DNA of 64,000 nucleotides, taken from Macrostomum lignano. Its lineage: Eukaryota. Shown piece after piece: positions 23,319-63,719 of this stretch (its first letter is position 1; the number at the start of each line of letters is the position of its first letter). The notes beneath the pieces are model-generated. The model did no database searches. It had not been told where the DNA came from and saw only the letters and a list, made by a program, of their open reading frames with translations. The position numbers and the translations under genes were made by a program. The stretch is taken from assembly GCA_002269645.1 (NCBI GenBank), contig NIVC01002359.1:1-64000 (forward strand), written 5' to 3'.

Positions 23319-24583
23319 TGAGGGCTAAGCAATAAGTTTTTAGATATGCATAGTTGAGAGGCAGCTGACAAAATCTGACACCATAGGTATCAAGTGCATT
23401 AGGCCCTATATAAGTACAATGTTTGTAAAGTTTCAGACACACTGGTCATATATATTCAGTGTAGCACCCAAACCAAGCTAGTATACCTACCGTATCTATC
23501 AAATTCACAATGGAGCTCAATATGAGTCATTTTAGAGCAATGATTTATTACTATTTTAAAAGTGGTTTGCAGCAGCAAGAAAGTCTTAAGCACTTGCAAG
23601 GAGCTTTTGGGTATGAAGCACCATCTAGATCCACCATTTTTGACTAGTTTGTCAAATTTCAATGTGGTAGATAGAGTCTGGATAATAAAGAGCATAGCGG
23701 CTGGCCTGTCTCCTCAATGACCAAGGATAGGCCTAATATTGCTGCTATCTGGGCCATGGTTGAGGATAGGCCTAATGTCCAAGTGACTATGGTCTAGATA
23801 GAAGCAGAAGTGGGCATCTCATCAGAATCTATCAGGACAATCCTGCATTCACAGCTCAACCTAAGCAAGATTTCTGCATGCTAAGTGCCTTATCAGTAGA
23901 CTCTGAAGCAAAAAGAGGCTCAGGTGACCTAATGCCACACCATGCTCGACAGATTCAATGGAAGTAGCTCAAACTCAGTCTGGGATATTGTCAGTGGTGA
24001 CAAGTTCTAGATCTATAGTTTTGACCCAGTGACTAAGCAGCAGTTGGCCCAGTGGACTCCAGTTAGTGGCACCCTACCATCTAAGCTTCAGCAAGAGCGC
24101 AGCATGGCAAAGCAGATAATGGCCATTTTTGTGGTAAAAACTGGTTATCTGGCTATAGTTCCACTTGTGCAGCAATGCAAAGTCACCAGTAACTAGTACA
24201 CCAACGTTTGCTTACCAGAAGTGCTAAGTGCTCTTTCTAGGCATTGCCCAAGGACTCAAGCTTGGGGCATCCTTCTCTATCATAACAATGCCCCAGCCCA
24301 CAAGGCTCAACTGGTGGTAGAGTTTCTGGCCAGAGAGTGCATTCAAGAGCTCGGTCATCCACCCTACAGCCCTGACCTGGCCCTTTGCAACTTTTTTGTG
24401 TTTCCACAAATCAAGCGCAAGATGTCTGGGATCTGCTATAGATCACCAAAAGCTGCAGTGGAGGCTTTTATCTGGCATGTGGAGGAGGTGCCTGCTTACA
24501 ATTGGTCCAGCTGCTTCAGCAAATGGTTTGAATGCATGAAAATTTGCATCGAATCTGCTGAAGAGTACTTTGAAAAGATGTAA
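23319..24583 (+). mobile_element. Decayed Tc1/mariner (mariner-type) transposon; transposase pseudogene 23510-24583
   Basis: MELNMSHFRAMIYYYFKSG...FGYEAPSRSTIFD*F, a WVP motif mutated to *VP, IVSGDKF*IYSFDP (GDETW), LYHNNAPAH, HPPYSPDLALCNF and EEYFEKM. TA followed by TGAGGGCTAAGCAATAAG at 23317-23340 resembles a mariner left TIR; no clear right TIR. Confidence 0.9.
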
Positions 24584-39800: not shown

Positions 39801-42800
39801 GGCTGGCTAATTTGCACTCTCTGGCAATGGCGTAGTAAAGTAGAGATGGATAAATTAATTAGAATCACGTCGTCAACTGTACTTGAGCAATCTTGTTACA
39901 ATTTGCTATTACTGTAAATGAGCAAAGGACAGAGAGAGTGATCGGTTATATCAAGATTGTTGCGTAAATAACTTTTTTGCGCTACCGAACACTTACAAGT
40001 TAAGCCAAGTGGGCAGCGGTTAGTACGCAGTTAAATAGACAAGATAAAGCTCAGCAGTAAACGTCTCTGACCCTCGCACCAAAGTGCCCTGGGTTCGATC
40101 TGGGGCTTCTGCGCTTCTTGCCCATGAAGGTCAACCACGAGGTACAGTGTGTACATGTCTCATAATGAGAAAGTCAAAGCCGCCGCTGTACACCCTGTGT
40201 GTGCGTGCTCAGGGCTGACTTCTTGCCTCTGCGGTTTAACTGGGTTGCGGTTGTGAATAAAAGCCCCCTGTAAACTGAGCACACTGAGCTGCAGTTCACC
40301 CTGCTGTGGTAGGGTAGCGTAAAAGCCCCCTGTAAACTGAGTACACAGAGCTGCAGTTCACCCTGCTGTGGTAGGGTAGCGTAAAAGCCCCCTGTAAACT
40401 GAGTACACAGAGCTGCAGTTCACCCTGCTGTGGTAGGGTAGCGTAAAAGCCCCCTGTAAACTGAGTACACTGAGCTGCAGTTCACCCTGCTGTGGTAGGG
40501 TAGCGTAAAAGCCCCCTGTAAACTGAGCACACTGAGCTGCAGTTCACCCTGCTGTGGTAGGGTAGCGTAAAAGCCCCCTGTAAACTGAGCACACTGAGCT
40601 GCAGTTCACCCTGCTGTGGTAGGGTAGCGTAAAAGCCCCCTGTAAACTGAGTACACTGAGCTGCAGTTCACCCTGCTGTGGTAGGGTAGCGTAAAAGCCC
40701 CCTGTAAACTGAGTACACTGAGCTGCAGTTCACCCTGCTGTGGTAGGGTAGCGTAAAAGCCCCCTGTAAACTGAGTACACTGAGCTGCAGTTCACCCTAC
40801 TGTGGTAGGGTAGCGTAAAAGCCCCCTGTAAACTGAGTACACAGAGCTGCAGTTCACCCTGCTGTGGTAGGGTAGCGTAAAAGCCCCTTGTAAACTGAGT
40901 ACACAGAGCTGCAGTTCACCCTGCTGTGGTAGGGTAGCGTAAAAGCCCCCTGTAAACTGAGTACACAGCTGCAGTTCACCCTGCTGTGGTAGGGTAGCGT
41001 AAAAGCCCCCTGTAAACTGAGTACACAGAGCTGCAGTTCACCCTGCTGTGGTAGGGTAGCGTAAAAGCCCCCTGTAAACTGAGCACACTGAGCTGCAGTT
41101 CACCCTGCTGTGGTAGGGTAGCGTAAAAGCCCCCTGTAAACTGAGCACACTGAGCTGCAGTTCACCCTGCTGTGGTAGGGTAGCGTAAAAGCCCCCTGTA
41201 AACTGAGTACACTGAGCTGCAGTTCACCCTGCTGTGGTAGGGTAGCGTAAAAGCCCCCTGTAAACTGAGCATACTGAGATGCAGTTCACCCTGCTGTGGT
41301 AGGGTAGCGGCGAGTTGCAACGCCAGAATGTCTCAGGTTACTCCAATGCAACCCGTGTAGTTTTCCCCTTGGAATTTCTACTTTTGACAACCATAATAAT
41401 CTGGCATTATCTCTAAACCCAGGTACTTGAACCTGCGCCAGGATGATCGCGTCTTCCAGGTGGAGCCGCACACCAGCCTCGGCTGTGTCCTATACGAGCT
41501 GATGCTAGGCGGCGAGCAGCGTGCGGCGTCTGAGCAGCTTGTTGCCTGTGAAATTCTGCCAGCAGTCGCGGAGGCGTCCGGGGATGAAACTGACACAGCA
41601 GAGGCGGCAGCGGCGGTCGCAGCGGCCTGCTGTCTAGACGGCGCTGCCGATTTCTCTGCCGATTCTTCCGACGGTGCCGCCGGCTCAGCTCCTCCCGCTG
41701 TTGCCCGCGCCCCCACCCGCTTTCCCGTTTCTCGAAGGCGTCGTGGCGGCGGCGGCGGCGGCGGCGGCGGCTTCGGTCGAAACGGGGGCCGGGGCGATCG
41801 GCGAGTCTCTGATGGCAGAGGCGGCGGCGGCGGCAGAAGCGAAGGCGGCGGTGGCGGCGCAGAAGGGGACGCCGTGCTGCAGGAGCTGCAAAAGCGGGCG
41901 CTGCGCTCGGGCCAGCTGCTAGCGGTGCAGGTGGTGAGCTGCTCCACCCGGGTGGACGTTCGCTGGCAGGACGGCCGACTGCAGACCGACATCTCGTCTT
42001 GGTGAGCGCCGATTTGCCTTTATTTCATTTGTTGATGCGTTTCTTTGTTCAAGCTGGCTTCTGCTACTTTTTTATTTTGTTGAGTGCCGACTTGAAAACT
42101 TCACAAGCAGCTTTTAAATGCCTTTTTCCAATTAGTGTTGATGTATTATTCTTCTTTGGCTTTGAAGTTCGCAAAGTTTCAATTTAGCAGATATTAGCCA
42201 CCTTCCTAATTAGGCATGTTTCTCTTCATTTCGAAACCAAGATAATGTGTTGCTTCAGACCTACACTCCACGTGTTAGTATATGATGTGAATTCACACAA
42301 TCACTCCGTAGCATGCTAATCTCAAATACAGTGTGACTTCACACATTCACTTCACTCCACAGAAAGCTTATTTCAAATACAGTGTGACTTCACACCTTCA
42401 CTCCACAGCACACTAATCTCAAATACAGTGTGATTTCACACCTTCACTCCACAGCACACTAATCTCAAATACAGTGTGATTTCACACCTTCACTCCACAG
42501 CACACTAATCTCAAATACAGTGTGACTTCACACCTTCACTTCGCAGCACACTAATCTCAAATACAGTGTACACACCTTCACTTCGCAGCTAGCTAATCTC
42601 TGTGTGACTTCACACCACTCGACAGCATGCTAATCTCAAATAGTGTGACTTCATACCTTGGCTTTAAATCACTCATCGTCTTACGGTGTGACGTCATGAA
42701 TCTGTATGTGCTTTGCTAACTTTTTACGGCATTTTTCCCCAATTAAAACCAAAAAAACCGACAAACAGCGATCTGGTGCCGTTCGACGATTTCATGGAGA

Positions 42801-43808
42801 GCCAATTCTTTCCTGGCGATTTTGTGCTCAGCAGCCAGCAGCAGCTGCAGCTGGAGGCCGACATCGGCGACGGCTCCAATCCGGCAAGCTCGTCGATGCC
42901 CGATCGCTACGGGCTGGTGCTGGAGAATGACGTCAGGCAGAAGCTGGCCAGAGTGCAATGGTTTCGCGAGGGCCCGGCCGCCTCTACCGCTACCGGCGGC
43001 GCCTCCGAACCGCTTGGCCAGCCCGAGCTAGTGAGCACCATCGACCTAAAGGAGTACCCTATCTATGAGTACAGGCCCAGGACTATCGTGATGCTCAAGT
43101 CGCAGCAGTTAGTGGGCGATCAGCCCGAAGCGGCAGCGGCATCTCCGCCCGGCCCTATCCAGTTAGGCGACGTTGTGCGAGTGGTGCTGGAAACGGTGAG
43201 ACTGCTGTGGGTCAGGGTTCAAATGTTGCTTCGGCGACATCGTTATACAAAACTAGCGCTGAGCCAATCCTGCCCATTCCGCTGACTTCTGAGCACATGC
43301 GAGCGCGTCGGTACTGTACGCAGGCACGTACTCAGGGTGTACAGTGCCCTGACTTTCTAATCATCAGGCATGTACACTGTCTGTGCCTGGGGGAAGGGGG
43401 TTGGCCGGCATGGGTTCGAGTCGCCCGACAACCCCCCGCCCTTCTCCAGCCAATTTTCATGCACAGGCTCCAAATTAAAGTTTAATTTGTTTAATAAATT
43501 ATTAGAGCGCTAAACTCTAACTAATGAGCCAGGTAGTTGTGTCGCGATAGCTAGGTGTTGACCGCTGAGCTGCTCTGCACGAAATAGATAGATGGGTAGA
43601 TGGACAGTTAGACAATGGGTATGTAGATTGATTGATTGATAATCAGGTGGGCAGAAGGACAGACAGGCAGACACTAAGAATAGGCGACAGGTGGCGTCGT
43701 CCGAGCCGGTGGCGAAGGCGTTGCCGCTGGGGAAGAACTGGGATGTTGGGCAGTGCGGGGCGGGTGGGTTGGCGCTGCGAGACAGGGCACTGGACAGACA
43801 GAAAGACT

Positions 43809-44001: not shown

Positions 44002-47000
44002 GGCAGGCAGACACTGACAGATTGATAGACAGACAGACAGACACTAAGACACAGACAGACAGACAGACAGACACTAAGACACAGACAGACAGACACTAAG
44101 ACACTAAGACGCAGACAGACACACAGACAGACAGACACTAAGACACAGACAGACAGACACTAAGACACTAAGACGCAGACAGACACACAGACAGACAGAC
44201 ACTAAGACCCAGACACACAAACAGACAGACAGGGAGACACAGACAGACAGTAAGACCCAGACAGACACACAGACAGACACTAAGACCCAGACACACAAAC
44301 AGACAGGGAGACACAGACAGACACTAAGACCCAGAGAGACACACAGACAGACAGGGAGACACAGACAGACACTAAGACCCAGACAGACACACAGACAGAC
44401 AGGGAGACACAGACAGACACTAAGACACAGACAGACAGACAGACACTAAGACCCAGACAGACACACAGTCAGACAGGGAGACACAGACAGACACTAAGAC
44501 ACAGACAGACAGACAGACACTAAGACCCAGACAGACACACAGACAGACAGGGAGACACAGACAGACACTAAGACACAGACAGACAGACAGACACTAAGAC
44601 CCAGACAGACACACAGACAGACAGGGAGACACAGACAGACACTAAGACACAGACAGACAGACACTAAGACCCAGACAGACACACAGACAGACAGGGAGAC
44701 ACAGACAGACACACAGACAGACAGACAGACACACAGACAGACAGACAGACACACAGACAGACAGACAGACATTGACACAGATACTTCAGAAATAGATTGA
44801 TCCACTTGGAATACGTAGTGTAAAAACTGGTAATAAAAGTTTCATTCAGTTTCATTCTATTTCATCGCTAAATCAGCTGTTAGTGTCAATGCAAACTGAT
44901 CTTCAAAGAGACCGGGAATTCAACTTGTTTCTTAAGCTAATAACCGCCCCCACTACCCCAGTGTAATTCTTCTTTTTTTGTTTGCCGAAAATCCGACATA
45001 TATTTGAGGATGGGAACTCTGCTGCCTACATATGTGCTTCAACCCCCCCCCCCCAGTGATTCGCACTTCCTGCCTCCGTCTATTACAGTTGTTTGCTCAA
45101 CAGCATACGCAATAGCTTATTATAACTACAAAGCTGTTGCAGTGTGCGGGCTAGGCTGTCAGTGGAACAGTTTCTGTGTCTTCATTTTCTGGTTTTATAG
45201 CATTCCATATATGTTCTATAAAAGAGCGCGTTAATAAAATTACTTTTCGATACATATCGGTATAATCATTACCTAACTATAAGTCTATTTAGGCCTATTC
45301 TAGCTTGTATGCAGTCTTATTATGTATCCTAGCGAATCACTTCTTAATAAAGTGTGCTTTCGATACATATCAACAGGGCAAAATTCGTGTCGCCTGGTTA
45401 GACGGCCAAGAGTCGGATCTGTGGCCCAGCGAGTTATTTAGTTTAGAAGGCCTTCTCAGTGGCGGCCCGGAGCAACGCTCGGCTAGCGAGTCTTCGAGCT
45501 TTTTCAACAATTTCGAAGCTGACTCGGACGATAACGAATCCTGGGAGACGGAGAGCGAAGAGACCGCTGAGCCTGACGAGGCTGACCGAGTAGGCATTGT
45601 TGTTCAAGTCACCAGCGGCGGGGATGTAGTTGCTATGGCTACAGAGGGAGACGACGAGATGGGCGGAGTGGCTACTGCCGCCAATTCGAATTGCTGGCTG
45701 CCGCACCACGCCTCCTGCTCGGATGAGTGGGCCTGCGCTAGACAGGTGGGTTTTTATAGTCTGTCGCAGTCTGTAATTGCTGTCACTGTGATTTTTGCAG
45801 TCTGTAGTTGCTGTCACTGTGATTTTTGCAGTCTGTAGTTGCTGTCACGGTGATTTTTGCAGCCTGTAGTTGCTGTCACTGTGATTTTTGCAGTCTGCAG
45901 TTGCTGTCACTGTGATTTTTGCAGCCTGTAGTTGCTGTCACGGTGATTTTTTGCAGTCTGTAGTTGCTGTCACGGTGATTTTTTGCAGTCTGTAGTTGCT
46001 GTCACTGTGATTTTTTGCAGTCTGTAGTTGCTGTCATGGTGATTTTTGCAGCCTGTAGTTGCTGTCACGGTGATTTTTGCAGCCTGTAGTTGCTGTCATG
46101 GTGATTTTTTGCAGTCTGTAGTTGCTGTCACGGTGATTTTTGCAGCCTGTAGTTGCTGTCACGGTGATTTTTTGCAGTCTGTAGTTGCTGTCACGGTGAT
46201 TTTTTGCAGTCTGTAGTTGCTGTCACTGTGATTTTTTGCAGTCTGTAGTTGCTGTCATGGTGATTTTTGCAGCCTGTAGTTGCTGTCACGGTGATTTTTG
46301 CAGCCTGTAGTTGCTGTCATGGTGATTCTTTGCAGTCTGTAGTTGCTGTCACGGTGATTTTTGCAGCCTGTAGTTGCTGTCACTGTGATTTTTGCAGCCT
46401 GTAGTTGCTGTCACTGTGATTTTTGCAGCCTGCAGTTGCTGTCACTGTGATTTTTGCAGCCTGTAGTTGCTGACACGGTGATATTTTGCAGCCTGTAGTT
46501 GCTGTCACTGTGATTTTTTGCAGTCTGTAGTTGCTGTCATGGTGATTTTTGCAGTCTGTAGTTGCTGTCACGGTGATTTTTGCAGTCTGTAGTTGCTGTC
46601 ACGGTGATTTTTGCAGCCTGTAGTTGCTGTCATGGTGATTTTTGCAGCCTGTAGTTGCTGTCACGGTGATTTTTGCAGTCTGTAGTTGCTGTCATGGTGA
46701 TTTTTGCAGCCTGTAGTTGCTGTCACGGTGATTTTTGCAGTCTGTAGTTGCTGTCACGGTGATTTTTGCAGTCTGTAGTTGCTGTCACGGTGATTTTGCA
46801 GCCTGTAGTTGCTGTCACTGTGACTGTCGCAGCCTGTAGTTGCTGTCATACCGGCTGTCACGCAGGCTGTCACAGCATCCATCGCACTCTGTGCCTTCTA
46901 TATGCTGCTGTCCTATGCTGCCGCCATTTTAGGTTGGTGTCCAGCTCAGGGAGCCGCTGCGACTCATTGCCGACTGCCTACGCGAGGCTGTAAACGCAAA

Positions 47001-50000
47001 TGCCTGTCGTACGGTAACATCAACAGTAGTGCACAGCATCCACCAGGCGCTGGACACCATCCTGCTAACAGCCCACGGCCTGCGCACCCAGCTGCACGAC
47101 CTGCGCTCTCGGCCGTCCTGCCTGTGCCGCAATGCCACAGCTAGTCAGCGCCAGGCTCTGCTGCAGTTCTCCAGCCACCTGCGGCACCTCACCGCCGACA
47201 CCGGCTGCCTGGAGGCCTTCACCGATCCGGAGGCCATGCCGGACAAGCTGGCGCCGTTGCGTCACGCGCTCACTCTGCGCCGTCCCGACGAGCAGCTGCT
47301 AGTGGATCAGCAGCAACGCGTTGTGCCAACATTTGTGCCGAGGGTGTCCAATCCGCTGTCCGACTCGCTTAGGCGCCTGTGGCAGTCGGCCACCAGCCTG
47401 ATGCGGGCCGGGCCCGACTTGCCGCCTGCTGAGCTGGACACTGACGCCCAGTTGGACGTGCCAGATGTGCGTTTGATTTGCCAGTCTGTCTGGACCTTCT
47501 GCTGTTTGTTTGTTGCTTATTGCATTTCCATTCGAGTTCAAAGCTGTAGTTTGGGACCGATCTTTGTTCGTATTCATCTGAAGGATTCTTTGGAGATTAA
47601 GAATTTTAGTTTTGAGGTTTGGATTCTTAGTTTTGAGGTTGGGATTCTTAGTTTTGAGGTTGGGATTCTGAGGTTGGGATTCTTAGTTTTAAGGCTGGGA
47701 TTCTTAGTTTTTGAAGTTGGGATTCTTAGTTTTGAGGCAGGGATTCTTAGTTTTAAGGTTGGGATTCTTAGTTTTGAGGTTGGGATTCTTAGTTTTTGAG
47801 GTTGGGATTCTTAGTTTTGAGGTTGGGATTCATAGTTTTGAGGTTTGGATTCTTAGTTTTGAGGTTAGGATTTTAAGTTTTAAGGTTGCGATTCTTAGTT
47901 TAGAGGTTGGGATTCTTAGTTTTGAGGTTGGGATTCTTAGTTTAGAGGTTAGGATTCTTAGTTTTAAGGTTGGGATTCTTAGTTTTGAGGTTGGGATTCT
48001 TAGTTTTTGAGGTTGGGATTCTTAGTTTTGAGGTTGGGATTCATAGTTTTGAGGTTTGGATTCTTAGTTTTGAGGTTAGGATTTTAAGTTTTAAGGTTGC
48101 GATTCATAGTTTTGAGGTAGGGATTCTTAGTTTTGAAGCTGGGATTCTTAGTTTAGAGGTTGGGATTCTTAGTTTTGAGGTTGCGATTCTTAGTTTAGAG
48201 GTTGGGATTCTTAGTTTTGAGGTTGGGATTCTTAGTTTTAAGGTTGGGATTCTTAGTTTTGAGGTTGGGATTCTTAGTTTTTGAGGTTGGGATTCTTAGT
48301 TTTGAGGTTGGGATTCATAGTTTTGAGGTTGGGATTCTTAGTTTTGAGGTTAGGATTTTAAGTTTTAAGGTTGCGATTCTTAGTTTAGAGGTTGGGATTC
48401 TTAGTTTTGAGGTTGCGATTCTTAGTTTTGAGGTTGCGATTCTTAGTTTTAAGGTTGGGATTCTTAGTTTTGAGGTTGCGATTCTTAGTTTTAAGGTTGG
48501 GATTCTTAGTTTTGAGGCTGGGATTCTTAGTTTTGAGGTTGGGATTCTTAGTTTTAAGGTTGGGATTCTTAGTTTTGAGGCTGGGATTCTTAGTTTGAGG
48601 TTGGGATTCTTAGTTTTGAGGTTAGGATTTTAAGTTTTAAGGTTGCGATTCTTAGTTTTGAGGTTGGGATTCTTAGTTTTGAGGCTGGGATTCTTAGTTT
48701 TGAGGCTGAGATTCTTAGTATTTGAGGTTGGGATTCTTAGTTCTTGAGGTTGGGATTCTTAGTTTTGAAGCTGGGATTCTTAGTTTTTGAGGTTGGGATT
48801 CTTAGTTGGAAGATTGGGATCACTAGTTTTATAAGCATTTTAAGGGGTGGATTTTTATGATTTGTTTGTTTAAACCTTACTAATTTTGATTAAATTTTTG
48901 TTGTTTTGTTTCTATATTGATATTGATGTCGCTGTGGTGGGGTCCGCACGTTCAATGTAGAATTGAGCATTGAATTTCAACCCGATGTCTGGACTTTAGT
49001 AAGATAAAAGATGCATATAAAGACATAATTTCTGATCCAGGCTCAATGATAAAACCGCTCCTGAAGGGTATAGCAAGCTTGTCAGAGAGCGCATCGGTTG
49101 CAAAGAAACAACAATTCACAGGACTAACCAGTAATGGTTTAGAATCGATTCATCTGTAATTAAATACACTCCAGCCGAGATGAGTAACAAAGAATGCTTG
49201 AAACGGATTAATGTCGGAATCGGCTGCCTTGAATGCGAATCAGTATTGGATTGATGGGCGCATTTGTTAGTTAGCTAACTAATTCCATAGCTAAATTGCC
49301 TGCAGATAAAATGGCTATGAATAAACTAATGAACTGTTTTGATTCTTTCCAAGCATTGCATACTATTGTCTTCAAACAGCTGTGCCCCTCTGAAGCTTCT
49401 AGGTATTCCCCTCTGGCGCTTCTAGTATTCCCCTCGGGAGCTTCTAGTATTCCCCTCGGGAGCTTCTAGTATTCCCCTCTGGAGCTTCTAGTATTCCCCT
49501 CTGGAGCTTCTAGTATTCCCCTCTGGAGCTTCTAGTATTCCCCTCTGGAGCTTCTAGTATTCCCCTCTGAACCCTCCAGCATTCTCCTCTGAACCCTCCA
49601 ATATTCCCCTCTGAACTCTCTAGTAATTCCCTCTAAACCCGCTAGAGCAACTCTGGAGAATGGTCTATTTATTCTTGCTTAGCAATCTACTTTTTGAACA
49701 ATAAAAATCATAATAAATAGCTCTTTTTATGGCTAACGCACACTTATCTTGCTCGTTGATATACACCTGTACATAACAGACCATGTTCTGTCGTTGTGCA
49801 TACTAGTACGCTCATATATGCATATCGTACTGGGTTGGCCGGCTGTCTTGTTGCATTAGCGAATCGCAGGTCAACGCACTGGACTCCTGTCCTATGTGTA
49901 TAAATATACTCCAATAGATTGCGGCTTTTTCAAGCCTCGTATTCAATGCATCCTATCTCTGGTGATCCATATCGAGTCTACTTTAGGTCACTTTCATTCT

Positions 50001-53000
50001 CTTCTCTAACGCGCATATTAAGAGAGCCTTATCCTGTGTGCGCGAGTAAGCTTTTTGGCGAGATTGCTTAATCGAGTTACCATAGGCCCGGCGGCTTTCT
50101 AGTTAGATTGCAGTAACTCACTGTGTTGTTAGTGTCTCCCTGGCTTACTAGGGGAGTTTTGGAATTACCTTGATGAGGCAGTAGCGGATGCCTGCCTGAC
50201 TCTCTCGGTGTGTCACTTCCTGCTTTCAGACTGCTAAATTTGATAGTTTTTAAAAGTAAATATGCCTGTAGTAATGTAATACTCTAGACCAAACAAGTCG
50301 ATGTGTGTCAATCGTACTACCCATTGTTCTCAAATATGTAAGAACAGGTTTACCTTCATCTATTCTCTTAAAAAATTTCGATGGAATCGAAATCTACGAA
50401 GGTCCGTCGATGCATAGTAGAATGCTTAACACTTTGGTAACCTTTAGAAAGACTGCAAACAAGGCGTTGGCTGGCTTGGATTGAAGATTGAAAATATAAT
50501 CTCTCCGAATTAGTCAAAACAATGGCCGTTTTGACTTTAAAACTCAGTCCTAAATTTGACGGAAATGGCATCAGTTACTATTTTTGCGCAATCGCTAATT
50601 TTCAAGACTTCAAGCTAAAGAGATTTGCTATCAAGTTATCTCAAGACTTCAAGCTAAGGAGATTGCTATCAAGTTATCTCAACACTTCAAGCTAAGGAGA
50701 TTGCTATCAAGTTATCTCAAGACTTCAAGCTAAGGAGATTGCTATCAAGTTATCTCAACACTTCAAGCTAAGGAGATTGCTATCAAGTTATCTCAACACT
50801 TCAAGCTAAGGAGATTGCTATCAAGTTATCTCAACACTTCAAGCTAAGGAGATTGCTATCAAGTTATCTCAAGACTTCAAGCTAAGGAGATTGCTATCAA
50901 GTTTTCGCAAGACTTCAAGCTAAGGAGATTGCTATCAAGTTAACTCAAGACTTCAAGCTAAGGAGATTGCTATCAAGTTATCTCAACACTTCAAGCTAAG
51001 GAGATTGCTATCAAGTTATCTTAAGACTTCAAGCTAAGGAGATTGCTATCAAGTTAACTCAAGACTTCAAGCTAAGGAGATTGCTATCAAGTTATCTCAA
51101 CACTTCAAGCTAAGGAGATTGCTATCAAGTTATCTCAACACTTCAAGCTAAGGAGATTGCTATCAAGTTATCTTAAGACTTCAAGCTAAGGAGATTGCTA
51201 TCAAGTTAACTCAAGACTTCAAGCTAAGGAGATTGCTATCAAGTTATCTCAACACTTCAAGCTAAGGAGATTGCTATCAAGTTAACTCAAGACTTCAAGC
51301 TAATGAGAATTGCTTAAGTTATCTCAAGACTTCAAGCTTAAAGACTCAAACTAATTATACGGTTTACCATGTTCGTGTAGATTTTCCATACGGATTAGTT
51401 AAGGAAGAGAGAGCATCATAACGTGGAGTGAAGACTACAGTTAGCTTCGTTTAGCTACATACCACATTGCGTGCACCGAAGCCATTCTGGTTGTGAACTA
51501 TTATCTGGTTTGGATTGTGGATAAGTCATATCATCGTCTTTCGTGATACGTGAGCCTAAAATGTGTCTTATAGGATAAAGCAAGATTACTCTGGGGCACA
51601 CTTTGAGACAAGCTGTGGTGACAACTTGGCAGCAAGCGACTTTTTTGCATGATTCGCAGCTTCCCTCCCTACTTTTTAATATCTTCTCGATCACTCTGCT
51701 AGTCGAATATTTTTCCGCGATTCTATCTACGTACTGGGGTACACTAGGCGTAGAACTGGGCGATAATATTCCCATGCGGCCTGGTTCCCACGCTTAGGGA
51801 TGAGGGAGAAGCTAATCGCCTTAAGCACAGGATCTTCATTTCTACTAAAGCACTGCAAATTTCTGGCACTGCAAATAGATTTTCAACGGCACTAAAATCA
51901 GTAGACTTTTGGCAGGAGGGGGGGGGGGCAAAATCTGCACACAAGTCTTCTGCTCCCTTGGGTAGGATAATTTTATTGTCTCTATGAGGGATTGTGGTGA
52001 GAGAAGATATTTTAATGGAAAGAGAGTGGTGGAAGATAATAGGAAGAATGGCAGAAAATATGATAAGGAATGGTAAGATATACGGGAGAGAAAGCTGTGA
52101 GATCTGGCAGATGTAGGTAGGAGAATGGTAGGAAATACAGAAAAAGAACAGTCAGAAGGCGAGAAGTAAAATCTACGAAGTACGACAAAGGGGTCACTCC
52201 ACCTGACTAAAGGCGGGTTGTGACACAACGGTATCACATTACATAATATGCCCGAAGGCATATTATAGAAGTGAGACATACCTGTGGCAACATTTGTACT
52301 CACCCACGCATTTATACTCTTGATGAGGAAAGGCAGCGAAATAAATAGCATAGCAGAACTGCGTCATGATCAGGCCACGATGTGGGACGCCCACTCTTCC
52401 ATTAGCTCATTTGCATAATTAGCCCACAATATAAAGGATTAGAAAGCCTTTATAGCTAATGAGGTTTTGAATTCACCTGTTACGAGTTTGTCGTCTGCAC
52501 GCCACCAAGCTTAGAGATATTAACACGAGCATAGATGACAATTGCATTGCTCCATTTGCTCCATTGGATTACAGGCTGTGAGGCTTTCGTTCGCTAGCTA
52601 GAAAATTACCTAATATATTCAAATTGATATAGCTAGTCTGTGTGAAAGAAAGTGTTAGTAAACCATGTTGACAAAACGCAAATTGACAAAACATTTCTCT
52701 CCCTCTCTCTGATGTCAATCAGAAAGATTGAAATCCCTAGTATAGGTGCTCTCTGCTCTATTTTTCTCCTCGATTTCGCTCTCGCCTTGTTTGCTCTGTG
52801 ACGTGTGTCGCCTACATCGATAACGCTTCCTCTCTGCTTGGTACTTCAAACTACTCGGCACTCGGCCAAAAATGCATGGCCAGCCATTCAGTCCCGCAGT
52901 TCAGTTAGGCGTGTTATACTTGATGGAGCAAAACTCCCAAGTGGGGACTCACCAAAGCATAAGAGAAGTTCGAGAATAAGTGAAATGCAACTGGGATCAA

Positions 53001-56000
53001 GTGTTAAGAGGAAAATGGCATATGCGTAGCAAAGCAAAGGCAACTAGTACGCTCGTATTTCCTTTTAAGCGCTCTCCTCGGCTCTATTAAAAATGCAGTA
53101 AAAAGCATTAAAAGAAAGTAAAAAGAGACGTAAGACTAAATTGTTTTTATTGCTTGTTCTTCAGATATTTATTGTCAAAACACTCCTAATTGTAGGTGGA
53201 AAATTAATTCGGTTCATTACATCATAGACGTTCGACATAAATTATTATACCTTTTCCGGACATCTTCTGAACTGAAAAAAATTGTCTGCTATTAAAAATA
53301 ATCATGCTCACACGAGCTACCAGGGTATAACCTGTGTCACATCCACCTTTTAGCTATATTAAAATCTCCGCAAGATTTTGGTGTCTAAAACCCTACAGTG
53401 CATTTGTATCCTTGAGCTAGAATATTAATGCAAGCAACGCCCCGGATTTTTGCTGATATTTCAAGTGCTACCGATTTCAACTGGCTTCAGCTGGGACTTT
53501 CTGCAGGCATTTAGACTGCTGGCTTGAAGCAAGCGATATTCTTAATCCTGAAAGCAGCATCACACTTCTTTGGCTAAGTCTCTTAGCACTCACGAAGATT
53601 TTCCTTCTAAGTAGAAAGCAATCCGTGTTTTTTGTGACTGATTTCATCTGGATTTCCTACTCTTTAGTGGCTCTTCCTAGCTTGACTGCTTGAAGTTCGT
53701 GTTTCCTGTGTCTCTCCTGCCCTTTCGTTTCCAACTCGATCGCTTCCTTTGCTAGTTTGACTCGCTTTCGGGCCTGCTCCTCTGATCGATCCTCTTCATC
53801 AGCTACTGCAAGCTTCTGTCAGGTTCATGCTTGGCATCTGACTTGCTTCGCCCTCTAATTTTATTATGCAGATTCTGAATCAATCGAAATATCAATGCTA
53901 AGTTACTCTCTCTCTAAAGGGTGGCACAGGTTGTGCAGTCTTTACTTTGATTGCTCAGAAGTGGTCGCTGGCTTATTGTATTAGTATATTTATTTCCGCT
54001 TCTCAACAGCATGCGCAACAAAAAGATCTAAGCGCGCTGATGCTGCATCAGTTTGCACTGGCACAATTTCTACGGAGCGAGAGCGAGAGGGAGAAGAAAA
54101 TAGGAAAATTAAAGGCGCGACACCGAATTCAATGGGATGCGAGTCGGGGTTTTAACGTCAATTCAAATCTTTCTTCAACTGCTTTCTGTTGGTATACGTC
54201 TGCATTATATTATTGTCTGACTCATTGTAACCGCAAATTGTGTTTGTTAGCTTAGAGTATTATTCCTTCATACAACACGAACAAAGTTTCCGCGATTAAT
54301 CTATTATTCAGTCTTGAAGTTCGTCAAACATCTTCTTGCCACGGAGCGGTGTGAACGAGAACCTCTTGCCGCGAAGCGGAGTGAACCTCTTGCCGCGAAG
54401 CGGAGTGAACTTCTTGCCGCGAAGCAGAGTGAATCTCTTGCCGCGAAGCGGAGTGAACCTCTTGCCGCGAAGTGGAGTGAACCTCTTGCCGCGAAGCGGA
54501 GTGAACTTCTTGCCGCGAAGCGGAGTGAACTTCTTGCCACGAAGCGGAGTGAACTTCTTGCCGCGAAGAGGAGTGAACCTCTTGCCGCGAAGTGGGGTAA
54601 ACTTCTTCCCACGAAGCGGAGTGAACCTCTTGCCGCGAAGCGGAGTGAACCTCTTTCCACGAAGCGGAGTGAACCTCTTGCCACGAAGCGGAGTGAACCT
54701 CTTGTCGTTCGAGCTCTCATCGTCCAGTTCTTGCTCTTCACCGTCGTCCTCCTGATCGTAGTAGGGCTCTCGGTCGTACGCGGTCGGGCTATTAACTTCG
54801 CTCAGTGCTTGCATCAGGTTGCGAACCTCGAATTCCGATGGTTCGTTCTCGCCCGTCAGCGCTTCCGGCTGATGCTGCTCTTGCTTTTGCTCCGTCGACG
54901 TAGCGTAGGCGGTTGAGAACATCGCCAAAGATACCAAGATGGCCACATATTGGGCGTACTTACACCTCGGCTTCATTTTCGCTCTTCACGCTATAGTTTA
55001 AAGCTGAACTGAAAAAGCCGATCAGTTGACTCCTTGACTCTGCCAGTTGTGCTTTATAGAGTCCAGTTAGGAGAGCTAGGTTGCCGCTCCAGTGTCTTTC
55101 TTCGCGTTGAATTTCTGCCTCTTTTTATCCCCTCTTTCCTGCAACGGAGCAGGGGTGGTTGCAGTTTTGCTCCGCATTTCATCAGCATTGCGCGCTGAGT
55201 CCAATTGGCTTCCACGGGTTGGATCCTATCAGAGTAAAGCTTCGGTGTTTGTTATGTCAGGATGCGATTTCCCCCACTGGCCGCACGCATACTCTCAATA
55301 ATCTCGACTCTCAACTTTAAGCTTTTGTTTAAAAGCTATAATTTCTTTTTGGAAAATAATACAACTGAACCAACTTGACGAGCCATTTGCAAATTAAATG
55401 CAATTTCAGCCGCTTGTGTCTCGGTTTGAAATTCGAATGTCATGAACTGTAGCTATGGAAACATAATTAGGTTTGCTCTTCTGGTATGGTTTTTTTATTA
55501 TCTAGCTTGTAGATCTCTATCATAATAAATAACGACGATAAAAATATTATATTGAAGGACTTTCATTACACATTAGAAATACTCAAAAAGAAATAACTAT
55601 TTAAAATATGTGGAAGATAATCGGTAATATGACCTGAAGCTTGTTATTGATTTGAGAACTCACTATGCCCTTATTGGCTTTAGTAATAGGCATTGACGTT
55701 GCTGATCCAAGTCTGCCGCATGATTATCCGCAGTGTCAGTTTCGTTGCTTGCCGCTCATCTCTAGTTGCTTTTGTCCATCCATCGTAAGGAGAAAATCGA
55801 AGCTTGAACTAGTTCTATCTTTTTTCTCCTACTTGCGGGGAAAAGACAAAGCCAATTTTCTCTTTTGGGCGGCTCCTCGGCAATCGATCGACTTTTGAGG
55901 GGAAATGCCGGCCAGTCTTTTCCGATCCCAATCTGGCCTTGCAGTATGTTGTTTATCATAAATTCAACAAAGCAGAAAAGCACACAGCGTGTTTTTAACT

Positions 56001-59000
56001 AAAGAGCGCACGCTTCTTGAGCCTGTGCTTGTCTATTAAACTTGATGATGTTCTTGGGATGTGCCACCGAACTCGTAAAAACTGTCGATACTATACTGTT
56101 TAACGGTTCATATTATGCCGTGTTGACTAAACCCAAACCCAGATTCCAGAATCCACTTTTGATTAATTCTAAACTGCTTCAATAATCAATAAAAAACCTT
56201 AATTAAAGCCGTAACACAATTTCGGACAGGTTCAAAGATTAAAGTGCTGCAATAGAAGTACATAAAAATTCTCGCTTCACTCTTGTTTGACAGCGTGGCA
56301 CAACTCTGAAAATTTAGGTATAGAGAGTTACTTTTTGTAGATATCAATACTTTGGAGAATTAACAACTGCAGCAATAAATATAGTTAAATTTCGTTGCAC
56401 CTGTGACCAAGACTGTGCTTGTCATGTATAGTCTGCAGTCCATATATTGAATTAGTCATTTTGCTTCTAGCTCGTACATACTCCAGAGCTTAAACTCTTA
56501 TTTACTCCCCACCCCACCCCCGCTCTATGCAGTACAACGCCATGCAAGAGATGATGCAGCTGCTGTACGGTCAGGTGCGACTTCGCATGGGCAGCCAGTT
56601 GACCGAGGCTACCCGCAACAATCTGGAATTCTTTCGCGGCACTATTTGCCGAGTTATGCAAGTCGAAATTGCCGAGGTAGCGGTGCCGGAGTCTACGGCT
56701 GGGACCGGAACTGCCGATCAGGTCTGTCGGTGGCCAATAATGGACAATGGCAGCTAAGGATAGGCAATGATGGACAATGGCAGCTAAGGATAGGCAATGA
56801 TGGACAATGGTAGCTAAGGATAGGCAATGATGGACAATGGTAGCTAAGGATAGGCAATGATGGACAATGGCAGCTAAGGATAGGCAATGATGGACAATGG
56901 TAGCTAAGGATAGGCAATGATGGACAATGGTAGCTAAGGATAGGCAATGATGGACAATGGTAGCTAAGGATAGGCAGTGATCGACAATGGTAGCTAAGGA
57001 TAGGCAATGATGGACAATGGTAGCTAAGGATAGGCAATGATGGACAATGGTAGCTAAGGATAGGCAATGATGGACACAATGGTAGCTAACGATAGGCGAT
57101 GATGGATAATGGTAGCTGAGGATAGGCAATGATGGACAATGGTAGCTAAGGATAGGCAATGATAGACAATGGTAGCTAAGGATAGGCAGTGATGGGCAAT
57201 GGTAGCTAAGGATAGGCAATGATGGACAATCGTAGCTAAGGATAGGCAATGATGGACAATGGTAGCTAAGGATAGGCAATGATGGACAATGGTAGCTAAG
57301 GATAGGCAGTGATGGACAATGGTAGCTAAGGATAGGCAGTGATGGGCAATGGTAGCTAAGGATAGGCAATGATGGACAATGGTAGCTAAGGATAGGCAAT
57401 GATGGACAATGGTAGCTAAGGATAGGCAATGATGGACAATGGTAGCTAAGGATAGGCAGTGATGGACAATGGTAGCTAAGGATAGGCAGTGATGGGCAAT
57501 GGTAGCTAAGAATAGACAATGAAAGCTAGGGATATGGACAAGGACAGCTAAGGATGGACAATGAAAGCTAGGGATATGACAAGGACAGCTAAGGATAGAC
57601 AATGAAAGCTAGGGATATGACAAGGACAGCTAAGGATAGACAATGAAAGCTAGGGATATGACAAGGACAGCTAAGGATAGACAATGAAAGCTAGGGATAT
57701 GACAAGGACAGCTAAGGATAGACAATGAAAGCTAGGGATATGACAAGGACAACTAAGGATAGACAATGAAAGCTAGGGATATGACAAGGACAACTAAGGA
57801 TAGACAATGAAAGCTAGGGATATGGACAAGGACAGCTAAGGATGCAGACGCAGTTAATAATGCTCAGCGGTATGTTCATTGGCGGCGATCACAGGAGCAG
57901 ACGGATCGCCAAGCCTCAAACCCAGCGTCGGCCTCCAAGCCAGCAGCACGTCCAACCGCATCTCCGGCAGCCGAGGGCGGAGCCGGCACCTTCCTCCTAG
58001 TCGAATGCGCCCCGCCAACGCATCTGCACTACGCCGAGTCGGCCTTCTCCAGTTCCGGCCTGCCGCCGAAGGCGTTCATTTCCGCCTGGAGACGCGAACT
58101 GGCCCTTCTTGGCGACCACCTGCCCAGGGGCGTCACCGTCAAAGCTTACGAGGACCGGATGGACCTCATGGCCGTTCTCATCGAGGGCCCGGCCGGCACG
58201 CCCTACTCTGGCGCCCTGTTCCTATTCGACCTTCATCTGCCCACTGCTTATCCCGCTCAGCCGCCGCGCCTGCTCTATCGATCCATGTGCTCTGGTCGGC
58301 TCAATCCCAACCTGTACGAGTGCGGCAAGGTGTGCGTCTCGTTGCTGGGCACCTGGGACGGCCAGGGCACTGAGCGGTGGGCACCGGGCGAATCAAACCT
58401 GCTGCAGGTGAGCTTTTGTAGTTGAACTGCTAGATATTCGATTTTTTTCTGTATCCAGTATCTCAGATAGCTAGTTAAAATCCCCATCTGAAAATCCCAG
58501 ATCCTCAATAAAATCCCAATCGGAGAATCCCAAATCCTCAATAAAATCCCAATCTAAGAATCCCAAAATCTTCATTAAAATCCCCATCTGAGAACCCCAA
58601 ATCCTCATTAAAATCTCATCTGAAAATCCCAAATCCTCATTAAAATCCCCATCTGAAAATCCCAACTCATTAAAATCCCCATCTGAAAATCCCAACTCAT
58701 TAAAATCCCTATCTAAAATCATTTGACCGCCGCCAGGTGCTGGTGTCGGTGCAGGGCCTGATCCTAGTCGAGGAGCCGCTATTCAACGAGCCCGGCTACG
58801 AGAAGGGCACCCAGGCGGCCGCGGTGAAGAGTCGCGAATACAACGAGCTGGCCGTGGTCCGAACCGCCCAGTCGATGGCCAGTCTGGTCTCCTCGCCGCC
58901 GGACACGTTTGCTGCCGAGGTCGGCCGCTACGCTGAAACTCGCTTGCGGAGCTACGCCGACCAGCTGGCCGACTGGCTGGCCGACCGCGGCCGGCCGGGC

Positions 59001-59099
59001 TTCCCGCTGCTGCCGCTGTCGGCCGGAGCCAAGCTGTCGCTCACTGCGGTGGTCAGGAGACTCACAGAACTTGCCGATAAGGTGCAGGGGAAGCAATGA
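33809..59099 (+). CDS. UBE2O: UBE2O (E2/E3 hybrid ubiquitin-conjugating enzyme), 10 exons, ~1316 aa
   Basis: Exons (plus strand): 33809-34267, 35403-35509, 36901-37311, 41423-42001, 42769-43195, 45377-45745, 46933-47466, 56533-56721, 57895-58407, 58737-59099 (3951 nt, all GT-AG, phases consistent). Motifs: VDVRWQDG...DLVP....QFFPGDFV, and UBC domain [23 protein letters not shown]...[20 protein letters not shown]...[23 protein letters not shown] with the catalytic Cys intact. Confidence 0.93.
34335..35215. repeat. 22-bp minisatellite with higher-order variants, UBE2O intron 1
   Basis: GATTTCCCATCGTACATGGTAG units. Confidence 0.92.
35265..35360 (-). mobile_element. SINE family A fragment in UBE2O intron 1
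   Basis: CCTAGTGGTTAGAGTG...GGTTCGATTCCC...TGTGTCCTTGAGCAAGACAC on the minus strand. Confidence 0.8.
36085..36755. repeat. 34-bp minisatellite, UBE2O intron 2
   Basis: GTGCAGGGTCCTCACCTTCATATAGCTGGTCATT units. Confidence 0.95.
37310..38450. repeat. 43-bp minisatellite starting at the UBE2O exon 3 donor
   Basis: GCGTGAGTCTGGGTCTGTCAAAGTGGGTCAAGGATGCAGCTTC, ~26 copies. Confidence 0.95.
40040..41340 (+). mobile_element. tRNA-derived SINE-like element (family B) with an internal 62-bp unit expanded ~17x
   Basis: A-box-like AGCTCAGCAGTAAA, B-box GGTTCGATCT, core GTGTACATG...GAAAGTC...CTGTACACCCTG...GTGCTCAG (shared with 4490-4600, 15420-15560 and 43270-43410 on the minus strand), then a 62-bp tandem array at 40256-41310. 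Confidence 0.6.
42290..42650. repeat. ~45-bp imperfect minisatellite, UBE2O intron 4
   Basis: CACACCTTCACTCCACAGCACACTAATCTCAAATACAGTGTGA units. Confidence 0.85.
43270..43410 (-). mobile_element. SINE-like family B core copy
   Basis: Same GTGTACATGCC...GAAAGTC...TGTACACCCTGAG...GTGCTCAG core on the minus strand. Confidence 0.55.
43678..43790 (-). pseudogene. Orphan fragment of a G-protein beta subunit gene (intron end plus 20 codons)
   Basis: Minus strand reads C-rich acceptor ...CCCAACATCCCAG then [20 protein letters not shown] (43737-43678), 19/20 identical to GNB1 [20 protein letters not shown]. It then runs into repeat-like sequence with no donor site and no further G-beta similarity. 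Confidence 0.85.
43790..44770. repeat. (GACA)n compound microsatellite, UBE2O intron 5
   Basis: GACA/GACAC runs with ACTAAG spacers. Confidence 0.95.
45770..46830. repeat. 30-31-bp minisatellite, UBE2O intron 6
   Basis: GATTTTTGCAGYCTGTAGTTGCTGTCACGGT units. Confidence 0.95.
47590..48815. repeat. 21-bp minisatellite, UBE2O intron 7
   Basis: GAGGTTGGGATTCTTAGTTTT units. Confidence 0.95.
49400..49640. repeat. 22-bp minisatellite
   Basis: CTTCTAGTATTCCCCTCTGGAG units. Confidence 0.85.
50600..51340. repeat. 38-bp minisatellite
   Basis: TCAAGACTTCAAGCTAAGGAGATTGCTATCAAGTTATC units. Confidence 0.95.
54308..54976 (-). CDS. Neuropeptide precursor (FTPLRamide prohormone), 222 aa, nested in UBE2O intron 7
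   Basis: Hydrophobic signal peptide ([25 protein letters not shown]), acidic spacer, then 15 units flanked by KR/KK with Gly amide donors: 13x FTPLRG, 1x FTLLRG, 1x FSFTPLRG. Variation between the 24-bp units is mostly synonymous or K/R swaps. Confidence 0.92.
   Translation of the reverse strand: MKPRCKYAQYVAILVSLAMFSTAYATSTEQKQEQHQPEALTGENEPSEFEVRNLMQALSEVNSPTAYDREPYYDQEDDGEEQELDDESSNDKRFTPLRGKRFTPLRGKRFTPLRGKRFTPLRGKKFTPLRGKRFTPLRGKKFTPLRGKKFTPLRGKKFTPLRGKRFTPLRGKRFTPLRGKRFTLLRGKKFTPLRGKRFTPLRGKRFSFTPLRGKKMFDELQD
55053..55058 (-). promoter_or_regulatory. Candidate TATA box of the neuropeptide gene
   Basis: TATAAA on the minus strand, ~30 nt upstream of a TCA dinucleotide context and ~80 nt upstream of the ATG at 54976. 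Confidence 0.35.
56745..57840. repeat. Compound minisatellite (30-bp then 41-bp related units), UBE2O intron 8
   Basis: TAGGCAATGATGGACAATGGTAGCTAAGGA, followed by AATGAAAGCTAGGGATATGACAAGGACAGCTAAGGATAGAC. Confidence 0.95.
58470..58720. repeat. Imperfect ~34-bp repeat, UBE2O intron 9
   Basis: TTAAAATCCCCATCTGAAAATCCCAAATCCTCA units. Confidence 0.85.
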
Positions 59100-59149: not shown

Positions 59150-60400
59150 ATGGATTGCTAATCTAGCCAGCTGGATTAGAATTGATTAGAGTGGATTTCT
59201 AATCTATCCAACTGGATTAGAATTGATTAGAGTGGATTGCTAATCTATCCAACTGGATTAGGAATGGATTGCTAATCTATTCAACTGGATTAGGAATGGA
59301 TTGCTAATCTATCCAACTGGATTAGGAATGGATTGCTACTCTATCCAACTGAATTAGAGTGGATTGCTAATCTATCAACTGGATTATAGTGGATTGCTAA
59401 TCTATCCAACTGGATTAGGAATGGATTGCTAATCTATTCAACTGGATTAGGAATGGATTGCTAATCTATCCAACTGGATTAGGAATGGATTGCTACTCTA
59501 TCCAACTGAATTAGAGTGGATTGCTAATCTATCAACTGGATTATAGTGGATTGCTAATCTATCCAACTGGATTAGGAATGGATTGCTAATCTTGGCAACT
59601 GGATTAGAGTTGATTAGAGTGGATTTCTAATCTAGACAACTCGATTAGAGTGGATTTCTAATCTAAGCAACAGGATTAGAGTGGATTGCTAATCTAGGGA
59701 ACTGGATTATAGTGGATTGCTAATCTAGCCAACTGGATTAGAATTGATTAGAGTGGATTTCTAATCTATCCAACTGGATTAGAATTGATTAGAGTGGATT
59801 GCTAATCTATCCAACTGGATTAGGAATGGATTGCTAATCTATCCAACTGGATTAGGAATGGATTGCTAATCTTGGCAACTGGATTAGAGTTGATTAGAGT
59901 GGATTTCTAATCTAGACAACTCGATTAGAGTGGATTGCTAATCTAAGCAACAGGATTAGAGTGGATTGCTAATCTAGGCAACAGGATTATAGTGGATTGC
60001 TAATCTAGCCTACTGGATTAGAATGGATTGCTAATCTATCAACTGGATTATAGTGGATTGCTAATCTATCCAACTGGATTAGGAGTGGATTGCTAATCTT
60101 GGCAACTGGATTAGAGTTGATTAGAGTGGATTTCTAATCTAGACAACTCGATTAGAGTAGATTGCTAATCTAAGCAACAGGATTAGAGTGGATTGCTAAT
60201 CTAGCCAACTGGATTAGAGTTAATTAGAGTGGATTGCTAGTCTATCCCACTGGATTAGAGTGGATTTCTAATCTATCCAACCGGATTAAAGTGGATTGCT
60301 AATCTAGGCAACTGGATTAGAGTGGATGGTTAATTTAACCAAATGGATTAGAATAGATTGCTAATCTAGGCAACTGGATTATAGTGGATTGCTAATCTAA
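59150..60400. repeat. ~31-bp imperfect minisatellite rich in GGATTA/TAATCT
   Basis: CAACTGGATTAGAGTGGATTGCTAATCTATC units, directly after the UBE2O stop. Confidence 0.93.
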
Positions 60401-63157: not shown

Positions 63158-63676
63158 TCACATGGCTCCGGGCGGAGCTCCTGTGTACTGGCTCAACGCC
63201 GATGCACTGGACGGCGGCGGCTGCCTCAGGCCGGCGGCGGCGGCGGCAGCCGGATAGGCGAAGGCGGCGGCGGCCGCGTGCTGCTTGGCGGCGGCCCGCA
63301 GTCGCAGGCTGTTGGCCAGCGGCGAGGAGTCGCCAGCAGCCCCGGCGGCGGACGACGGACCCGCCGCAGCAGCAGCAGCCGACGGTGGCTGCGAGTACAG
63401 CGGCGAATACGGCGACGGCCCGGCGTAGGGGCAGGCGGGCGCGGCAGCAGCGGCGGCGGGTCCGGCCGGGTGGCCAGCCGGCGTCCACGGGAAGCTCTTG
63501 GCCGTCGCCCAGCCGGTGGCTCCGTAGCCAGCCGCGGCGGCAGCGCCGTATGAGGAATAGAAGGAGTCCTCGAATGGCTGCATGAAGCTGCCGAACTGGC
63601 CGGTAAAGGTGCCCTTCAGCGCCTCCAGGTGGCGCTCGCGCTTGCGCCATTTGGCGCGGCGGTTTTTGAACCAGAC
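63158..63676 (-). CDS. PITX: Pitx homeobox gene, last coding exon (5' exons lie beyond the window)
   Basis: Acceptor ...TCTGCTCAG then VWFKNRRAKWRKRER (K50 homeodomain helix 3, conserved intron position), GQFGSFMQPFED, TAKSFP and an OAR-like LANSLRLRAAAKQH, all Pitx hallmarks. Confidence 0.93.
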   Translation of the reverse strand, partial: VWFKNRRAKWRKRERHLEALKGTFTGQFGSFMQPFEDSFYSSYGAAAAAGYGATGWATAKSFPWTPAGHPAGPAAAAAAPACPYAGPSPYSPLYSQPPSAAAAAAGPSSAAGAAGDSSPLANSLRLRAAAKQHAAAAAFAYPAAAAAAGLRQPPPSSASALSQYTGAPPGAM

Positions 63677-63719
63677 CTGAGCAGATGGGGCGGTTGCAGA
63701 ATCGGTCACTTCATTGCTT

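Follow-up and report, generated by a model that had tools for sequence, protein, structure and literature searches.

Can an open reading frame (ORF) built largely of 24-nt tandem repeats be taken for a peptide-coding gene when it lies among many other tandem repeats? This question is raised by an ORF at positions 54308-54976, minus strand, of a 64,000-nt stretch of genomic DNA (hereafter the window), which comprises positions 1 to 64,000 of contig NIVC01002359.1 of the Macrostomum lignano assembly Mlig_3_7 (GCA_002269645.1), window coordinates being those of the record. An initial annotation, made from the sequence letters, had described the ORF as a multi-copy prohormone for the amidated pentapeptide FTPLR, hidden antisense inside a UBE2O intron of a probable flatworm, and M. 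lignano is indeed a flatworm. Our analysis indicates that the ORF is very probably a genuine M. lignano secretory prohormone gene with a probable promoter of its own, lying antisense in an intron of about 10 kb of a UBE2O-like gene.

The precursor and its predicted processing

The anatomy of the precursor was read directly from the sequence, and from it we infer the processing steps. An in-frame TGA stands at 54986-54988 on the minus strand, 9 nt before the ATG at 54974-54976 (context AAAATGA), and this ATG is therefore the earliest possible start. The N-terminus carries the basic residues K2, R4 and K6 and a hydrophobic core at residues 8-20 (Kyte-Doolittle 11-mer maximum 2.47), and near residue 25 the sequence AYA/TS satisfies the -3/-1 rule; a signal-peptide-like N-terminus is thus predicted. 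The acidic spacer that follows leads to a KR site and to an array of 15 units, every one of which ends in Gly followed by a dibasic pair (G-K-[KR]). The array consists of 13 FTPLRG, one FTLLRG and one FSFTPLRG, giving 14 units of eight residues and one of ten, and both the anatomy and these counts agree exactly with the initial annotation. Tandem Repeats Finder (TRF) describes the array with a period of 24, 14.4 copies, 91% matches and 0 indels, the period being exactly eight codons. A signal peptide ahead of an acidic spacer and numerous Gly-[KR][KR] units make the layout that of a classic neuropeptide precursor, and in all likelihood the protein is of the multi-copy amidated-peptide kind. 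The coordinates of the gene and of its host are collected in Table 1.

If the precursor is processed as this layout suggests, translation would start at the ATG at 54976, the first start past the in-frame stop, and a signal peptide of about 25 residues would be removed upon entry into the secretory pathway. A PC2-type convertase would then cut after all 16 KR/KK sites, a carboxypeptidase would trim the basic residues, and the exposed Gly would become the amide at the C-terminus. Each precursor would release 13 copies of FTPLR-NH2, one of FTLLR-NH2 and one of FSFTPLR-NH2 (calculated [M+H]+ 632.3878, 648.4191 and 866.4883, respectively), together with an acidic 66-residue spacer peptide and the tail peptide MFDELQD. 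The amidated pentapeptides would serve as a neuropeptide or peptide hormone acting on a G-protein-coupled receptor (GPCR), a peptide-gated channel being less likely. In M. lignano a PC2 homologue shows expression in the nervous system, and hatched animals cannot do without it (Arbore et al. 2015, PMC4490696).

Variation among the repeat units follows the codons of one frame

The window is saturated with tandem repeats, and for this reason it matters whether the array is coding or a minisatellite. In the window 34 TRF rows score at least 200, with periods of 19-152 nt and some rows describing the same array, and introns of the UBE2O-like gene contain many of the minisatellites, with several in the one that houses the peptide gene. 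Examples of minisatellites are found at 47606-48807, 50602-51338, 56735-57843 and 59225-60399. Such arrays yield long spurious ORFs, for instance one of 350 aa at 56467-57519 on the minus strand, which is longer than the prohormone ORF.

When the 15 units were aligned over 24 nt, 12 distinct variant states were found, 10 synonymous, one an R/K exchange at the second basic position of the cleavage site and one a change from P to L. With 26.4% of possible single-base changes being synonymous, the binomial probability of at least 10 synonymous states out of 12 is 6.2e-5, and the same 12 variants read in the other five frames give 0, 2, 1, 7 and 3 synonymous changes. These counts bear out the claim of the initial annotation that the differences between units are mainly synonymous or K/R swaps. 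Five other minisatellites of the window, with periods of 21, 24, 30 or 33 (all multiples of three), served as controls, two more arrays being not alignable in register. In these controls variants fall evenly into all three column phases (e.g. 2/6/5, 3/2/3, 2/3/2 and 5/5/6), no codon phase is seen, and the synonymous fraction is at most half in any frame. On this pattern, purifying selection appears to act on the peptide, and on the FTPLRGKR frame only. The non-repetitive codons 1-93, which comprise the signal peptide, the spacer and the first KR, have GC contents at the first, second and third codon positions (GC1, GC2 and GC3) of 0.59, 0.34 and 0.70; GC3 is 0.70-0.83 in neighbouring exons of the window, and the flanking intron sequence stays at about 0.40 whatever the phase.

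A rival reading takes the array for a neutral 24-bp minisatellite with several frames open by chance; ORF and gene model alike would then be artefacts, arising for example from antisense noise of the UBE2O pre-mRNA. The 34 strong tandem-repeat rows, several in the very same intron, the longer ORFs offered by other arrays (350 aa at 56467-57519) and the fact that the FTPLR array is open also in two plus-strand frames would all fit such an origin, but the variants cluster at the third codon positions of a single frame, a pattern that the five controls do not show, the period is exactly eight codons with no indels, an ATG, a signal peptide and 93 non-repetitive codons with exon-like GC3 stand ahead of the array, and a separate gene on the opposite strand is present in a transcript-built annotation. 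The neutral-minisatellite reading is strongly disfavoured, and we regard it as very improbable.

The peptide gene is annotated and is nested antisense in a UBE2O-like intron

An identical 222-aa product is already present, as an unnamed called gene, in the annotation of GCA_002269645.1, and the gene is to this extent not hidden, contrary to the initial annotation. The NIVC01000000 record is the annotated Mlig_3_7 genome of M. lignano (Wudarski et al. 2017, PMC5730564), and its annotation was built from RNA-seq and de novo transcripts only, using StringTie/TACO, strand filtering, TBONE boundaries and TransDecoder (PMC5730564). Since the annotation is transcript-built with strand filtering, a minus-strand transcript at the prohormone locus is implied. 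The positions of a candidate TATAAA box and of two candidate AATAAA signals (Table 1) fit an independent transcription unit for the peptide gene. No further copy or FTPLR-like ORF was found in the 64-kb window beyond 54308-54976, and an Rfam scan of the window gave no match at the prohormone locus.

Exons with matches to UBE2O Pfam families are found on the plus strand on both sides of the peptide gene, the exon with the ubiquitin-conjugating (UBC) core having its donor site CAG/GTGAGC at about 58411. The deposited UBE2O-like model, of 1316 aa, contains the same three Pfam families, ends at 59099 and extends across the peptide gene, on the other strand. With UBE2O exons on the plus strand on both sides and a gene model spanning the locus, the peptide gene lies antisense within a host intron, as the initial annotation had proposed. 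This intron runs roughly from about 47.5 kb to about 57.9 kb, its boundaries being approximate.

Several points weigh against the conclusion that the ORF is a genuine prohormone gene. The conservation is seen only among repeat units of one gene, and under concerted evolution such units are not independent; an orthologue or paralogue for comparison was not found in the searched databases; the support for transcription from the minus strand is indirect, coming through the provenance of the annotation; and the call of the signal peptide is heuristic.

Table 1. Features of the FTPLR-amide precursor gene and of the UBE2O-like host gene, in window coordinates.
Feature	Position	Strand	Basis or remark
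Prohormone coding sequence, complete, single exon	54308..54976	-	222 codons, ATG to TGA stop (54308-54310)
Predicted signal peptide, residues 1-25	54902..54976	-	hydropathy profile and -3/-1 rule, cleavage predicted after AYA
Acidic spacer, residues 26-91	54704..54901	-	21 D+E vs 3 K+R, isoelectric point 4.05
First dibasic site, K92-R93, immediately ahead of peptide copy 1	54698..54703	-	sequence parse
Peptide array, residues 94-215	54332..54697	-	15 units, every one followed by KR or KK
C-terminal tail peptide MFDELQD	54311..54331	-	sequence parse
TATAAA box, candidate core promoter	55053..55058	-	77 nt upstream of ATG, sequence match
Candidate poly(A) signal AATAAA, first after stop	53989..53994	-	3' untranslated region of ~315 nt, sequence match
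Candidate poly(A) signal AATAAA, second	53860..53865	-	~445 nt downstream of stop, sequence match
Host exon region, UBE2O SH3-B	42713-43285	+	Pfam PF23043, E=1.7e-8
Host exon region, UBE2O SH3-C, upstream of host intron	45305..45838	+	Pfam PF23044, E=1.8e-7
Further probable host coding stretch	47029 to about 47470	+	translation
Host exon, UBC (UQ_con) core, downstream of host intron	57961..58411	+	Pfam PF00179, E=3.2e-15, match 58159-58425
Host last exon, after CAG acceptor	58737-59099	+	splice-site sequence; gene model ends 59099

Homologue searches and the case for a lineage-specific peptide

A word-indexed protein search with the whole precursor returned nothing at E<=0.01; with the N-terminal 109 residues it returned one candidate and 0 matches, and with the repeat region alone only meaningless short repeats. 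The precursor was missing from the protein collection in an exact-sequence cluster look-up, and nothing was found in two scans of metagenomes, for which the peptides were back-translated in one case and a degenerate DNA pattern of two units was used in the other. The searched databases evidently hold almost no proteins of Macrostomum or of free-living flatworms, and the absence of homologues is therefore weak evidence.

A full phmmer search against 1.84 billion protein representatives gave 396 matches, nearly all of them unrelated eight-residue repeats such as the mucin repeat GTPSTGKT and the bacterial VRGARGTG. Since unrelated repeats top the list, the E-values for this repeat query are inflated and give no evidence of homology. 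A screen for multi-copy prohormones covered the 150 matches listed out of the 396. Among those 150, leucokinin-type (...PWG-amide), ...PFL-amide and ...AWH-amide precursors were picked out, together with four precursors having the C-terminus of the query, all natalisin-type by motif; no tachykinin precursor was present among them. The four with the same peptide C-terminus are Uloborus diversus XP_054719796.1 (P0098), a cluster holding Parasteatoda tepidariorum XP_042905745.1 (P0086) and two matches from Logan assemblies (P0038 and P0054). Their units include SQFFPLRGKK, SSFMPMRGRR, SSFTLMRGRR and DDPF[YFI]PMRGRR, and in pairwise alignment the likeness to the M. lignano precursor is limited to [KR]-x-F-x-P-[LM]-R-G-[KR][KR]. 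The spider proteins P0086/P0151 (XP_042905745.1) and P0098 are annotated as 'uncharacterized' and hold 11-13 copies of ...F[FM]P[LM]RG[KR][KR] in a natalisin-type architecture; they are called natalisin-type here from the motif and not from their annotation.

The planarian spp and npp prohormones come from the same phylum and resemble the M. lignano gene in type and in the logic of processing, as in SPP-3, whose YLINPRL-amide has been validated by mass spectrometry. They differ from the M. lignano precursor in that none of the 51 Schmidtea mediterranea prohormones (Collins et al. 2010 supplements) has PLR or a multi-copy xR-amide peptide. The FTPLR-amide precursor could accordingly be a neuropeptide specific to Macrostomorpha or to flatworms, with no orthologue elsewhere and with a convergent likeness to other FxPxR-amide peptides. 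We give this explanation an even chance. It agrees with the absence from Schmidtea and with a non-repeat part that has no homologue in any searched database, tempered by the near emptiness of those databases for Macrostomum and free-living flatworms. McVeigh et al. 2009 reportedly described many flatworm neuropeptide families as phylum-restricted.

Relationship to natalisins and tachykinins

The C-terminus FxxxR-amide is common to tachykinin-related peptides (TRPs) and natalisins, TRPs ending in FxGxR-amide, and natalisins in FxPxR-amide in Diptera and, in certain other orders, in FWxxR-amide (Jiang et al. 2016, PMC4730192). A review (Nässel et al. 2019, PMC6880623) reports natalisins only from arthropods and tardigrades, regards them as the outcome of a duplication of the tachykinin system within Panarthropoda, and notes that flatworms have so far yielded no tachykinins. 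FTPLR-G, FTLLR-G and FSFTPLR-G all match FxxxR-amide. By its C-terminal motif FTPLR-amide would belong with the FxxxR-amide peptides, as an FxPxR-amide variant, and either descent or convergence could have brought it there.

The likeness to natalisins lies in a multi-copy precursor of dibasic-flanked, Gly-terminated peptides ending in F-x-P-x-R-amide, and the spider units FFPLRG-KK, FMPMRG-RR and FTLMRG-RR are one or two residues off FTPLRG-KK or FTLLRG-KK. The differences are equally plain. Natalisins have N-terminal extensions (the Drosophila peptides are of 15-24 residues, often with ...DDPF...), whereas the M. lignano peptides have five residues and one has seven; natalisin copies are parted by variable spacers, whereas the FTPLR pentapeptides abut directly; natalisin precursors show no likeness to the M. 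lignano precursor outside the motif; and a flatworm gene falls outside the Panarthropoda, to which natalisins and their receptor are reported to be restricted. With TRPs the peptides share F at position -5, the C-terminal R-amide, the multi-copy precursor and the dibasic and Gly processing signals, but position -3 is Pro (Leu in one copy) and never the defining Gly, and the FTPLR peptides are much shorter. Tachykinin precursors rarely conserve anything besides the peptides.

A link of FTPLR-amide to the tachykinin/natalisin family, as put forward in the initial annotation, is thus plausible as regards the motif, which fits both FxxxR-amide and FxPxR-amide. What speaks against the link is that the likeness is confined to a five-residue motif, with no precursor likeness, no tachykinin Gly and phmmer E-values that are inflated on repeats, that natalisins are reported only from Panarthropoda, the organism here being a flatworm (PMC6880623), and that the 51 Schmidtea prohormones contain nothing similar.

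In its strongest form this link would make the FTPLR-amide precursor a true flatworm orthologue of the bilaterian tachykinin system, carrying a Gly-to-Pro variant parallel to that of the natalisins and acting on a tachykinin-clade GPCR. The F-x-x-x-R-amide spacing and the multi-copy architecture are as in TRPs and natalisins, and the nearest real prohormones among the phmmer matches listed are natalisin-type. Moreover, one monogenean flatworm reportedly has, on phylogenetic grounds, a tachykinin-type receptor (PMC9645230), yet flatworms have no known tachykinin (PMC6880623); with a receptor but no known ligand in the phylum, an unrecognised ligand may exist. Orthology is nevertheless unlikely, since only five residues can be compared, the Gly of protostome tachykinins is absent, the N-terminal extension is missing (TRPs have 9-10 and natalisins 10-17 residues; PMC6880623, PMC4730192), the precursors are not similar beyond the motif (the N-terminal 109 residues match nothing), Schmidtea has no counterpart and short amidated motifs are easily convergent. 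That FTPLR-amide is the missing flatworm ligand of the tachykinin family, its Gly-to-Pro variant having arisen independently of the arthropod natalisins, is to the same degree doubtful.

Non-neuronal secretion and other peptide families

A secreted multi-copy peptide need not be neuronal, and the precursor could instead furnish a gland product such as a pheromone or a seminal, adhesive or defensive peptide. The sequence speaks for secretion and processing and is silent on cell type, and some planarian prohormones are expressed outside the central nervous system (PMC2953531), but the signal peptide, the acidic spacer and the numerous identical short Gly-[KR][KR] units follow the layout classic for neuropeptides, and we regard a gland product as improbable.

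That the precursor is bradykinin-like or pyrokinin (PRX-amide)-like has a negligible likelihood: although Pfam PF06753 (Bradykinin) scores 52.7 bits over the whole protein (gathering score 20.7) and FTPLR is both the C-terminus of frog Thr6,Leu8-bradykinin-related peptides and a permutation of FxPRL, the Pfam score is summed over the repeats, with 0 stretches significant alone and profile positions 8-14 only, in bradykinins the C-terminus is free and the N-terminus reads RPPG whereas the FTPLR peptides are Gly-extended for amidation and have no RPPG, skin peptides of frogs have no bearing on a flatworm, and the C-terminal PRL-amide of pyrokinins is absent.

The Pfam Bradykinin match was rejected as a summed-repeat artefact of 15 weak FTPLR matches. 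The frog skin peptides (...GFTPLR), a vertebrate defence secretion, share with the M. lignano peptides the FTPLR string and the tandem precursor, and the match is a five-residue coincidence. That PF06753 passes its gathering score here makes it an annotation trap for tandem short peptides. Pyrokinin/PRX-amide was likewise rejected, the defining C-terminal FxPRL-amide being absent and the peptide ending in P-L-R-amide, with the last two residues in the other order. The remark in the initial annotation that FTPLR-amide is a pyrokinin ending with two residues swapped carries no evidential weight, because the PRL-amide that defines the family at the C-terminus is absent. Leucokinin-type precursors resemble the query in an F-[ST]-P-x-x-amide core and a tandem multi-copy layout, as in the phmmer match P0121 with its AFSPWGGKR units, and leucokinin was rejected as well, its defining C-terminal FxxWG-amide being absent, with L-R in place of W-G (FXSWGamide, PMC6880623).

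Other features of the window

Two exon-sized ORFs on the minus strand, at 15807-16190 and 17660-18319, belong to a WD40-repeat beta-propeller gene (Pfam WD40, E=8.5e-38 and 5.5e-30). An ORF at 63158-63709 on the minus strand, in which the C-terminal portion of a homeodomain (VWFKNRRAKWRKRE) comes first and a tail rich in Ala and Pro follows, probably represents the final exon of a homeobox gene of the paired-like type; its Pfam Homeodomain match (E=7.7e-4) is below the curated cut-off. On the plus strand, a 120-aa ORF at 24221-24583 with a weak match to the DDE_3 transposase (E=3.3e-4) is probably a mariner/Tc1-like remnant, and an ATG-initiated ORF of 391 aa at 28574-29749, rich in Pro, Ser and Ala and with no Pfam match, is possibly a single-exon gene. 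An Rfam tRNA match of 32.6 bits (gathering score 29, E=0.006) lies at 11292-11361 on the minus strand; ARAGORN found no tRNA in the whole window, and this element may be degenerate or tRNA-derived.

Standing in the literature and significance

The flatworm neuropeptide catalogue of McVeigh et al. 2009, with Ladurner as a co-author, reportedly included M. lignano expressed sequence tags. The gene may already bear an npp number in that catalogue or in the one of Koziol 2016. In the literature searched, outside which these two catalogues lie, no description of the peptide was found, in agreement with the initial annotation. There, 'FTPLR' occurs only in frog bradykinin papers and in chance strings, '...PLRamide' only in one unrelated ant paper on short neuropeptide F, and 'LRamide' together with 'flatworm' nowhere; no M. 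lignano neuropeptide catalogue was found among the listed papers that name both Macrostomum and neuropeptides. The FTPLR-amide precursor is real, apparently undescribed and of the ordinary multi-copy amidated-peptide type.

Genes of this type turn up by the dozen in every neuropeptidome survey. The locus exemplifies an independent gene nested antisense in a minisatellite-rich intron, and the codon-phase test offers a simple way to tell coding repeats from neutral ones. M. lignano is a transgenic flatworm model amenable to RNA interference (RNAi), in which a high-copy amidated peptide gives a handle on one peptidergic cell population, by antibody, in situ probe, promoter-reporter or RNAi. If the peptide is lineage-specific, it is one more of many taxon-restricted neuropeptides, useful and unsurprising. 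An FxxxR-amide peptide also makes the retention of tachykinin-type signalling in flatworms testable by receptor pairing, and if FTPLR-amide should prove to be the missing tachykinin-family ligand, tachykinin-type signalling would persist in Platyhelminthes and the FxPxR-amide form would have evolved at least twice.

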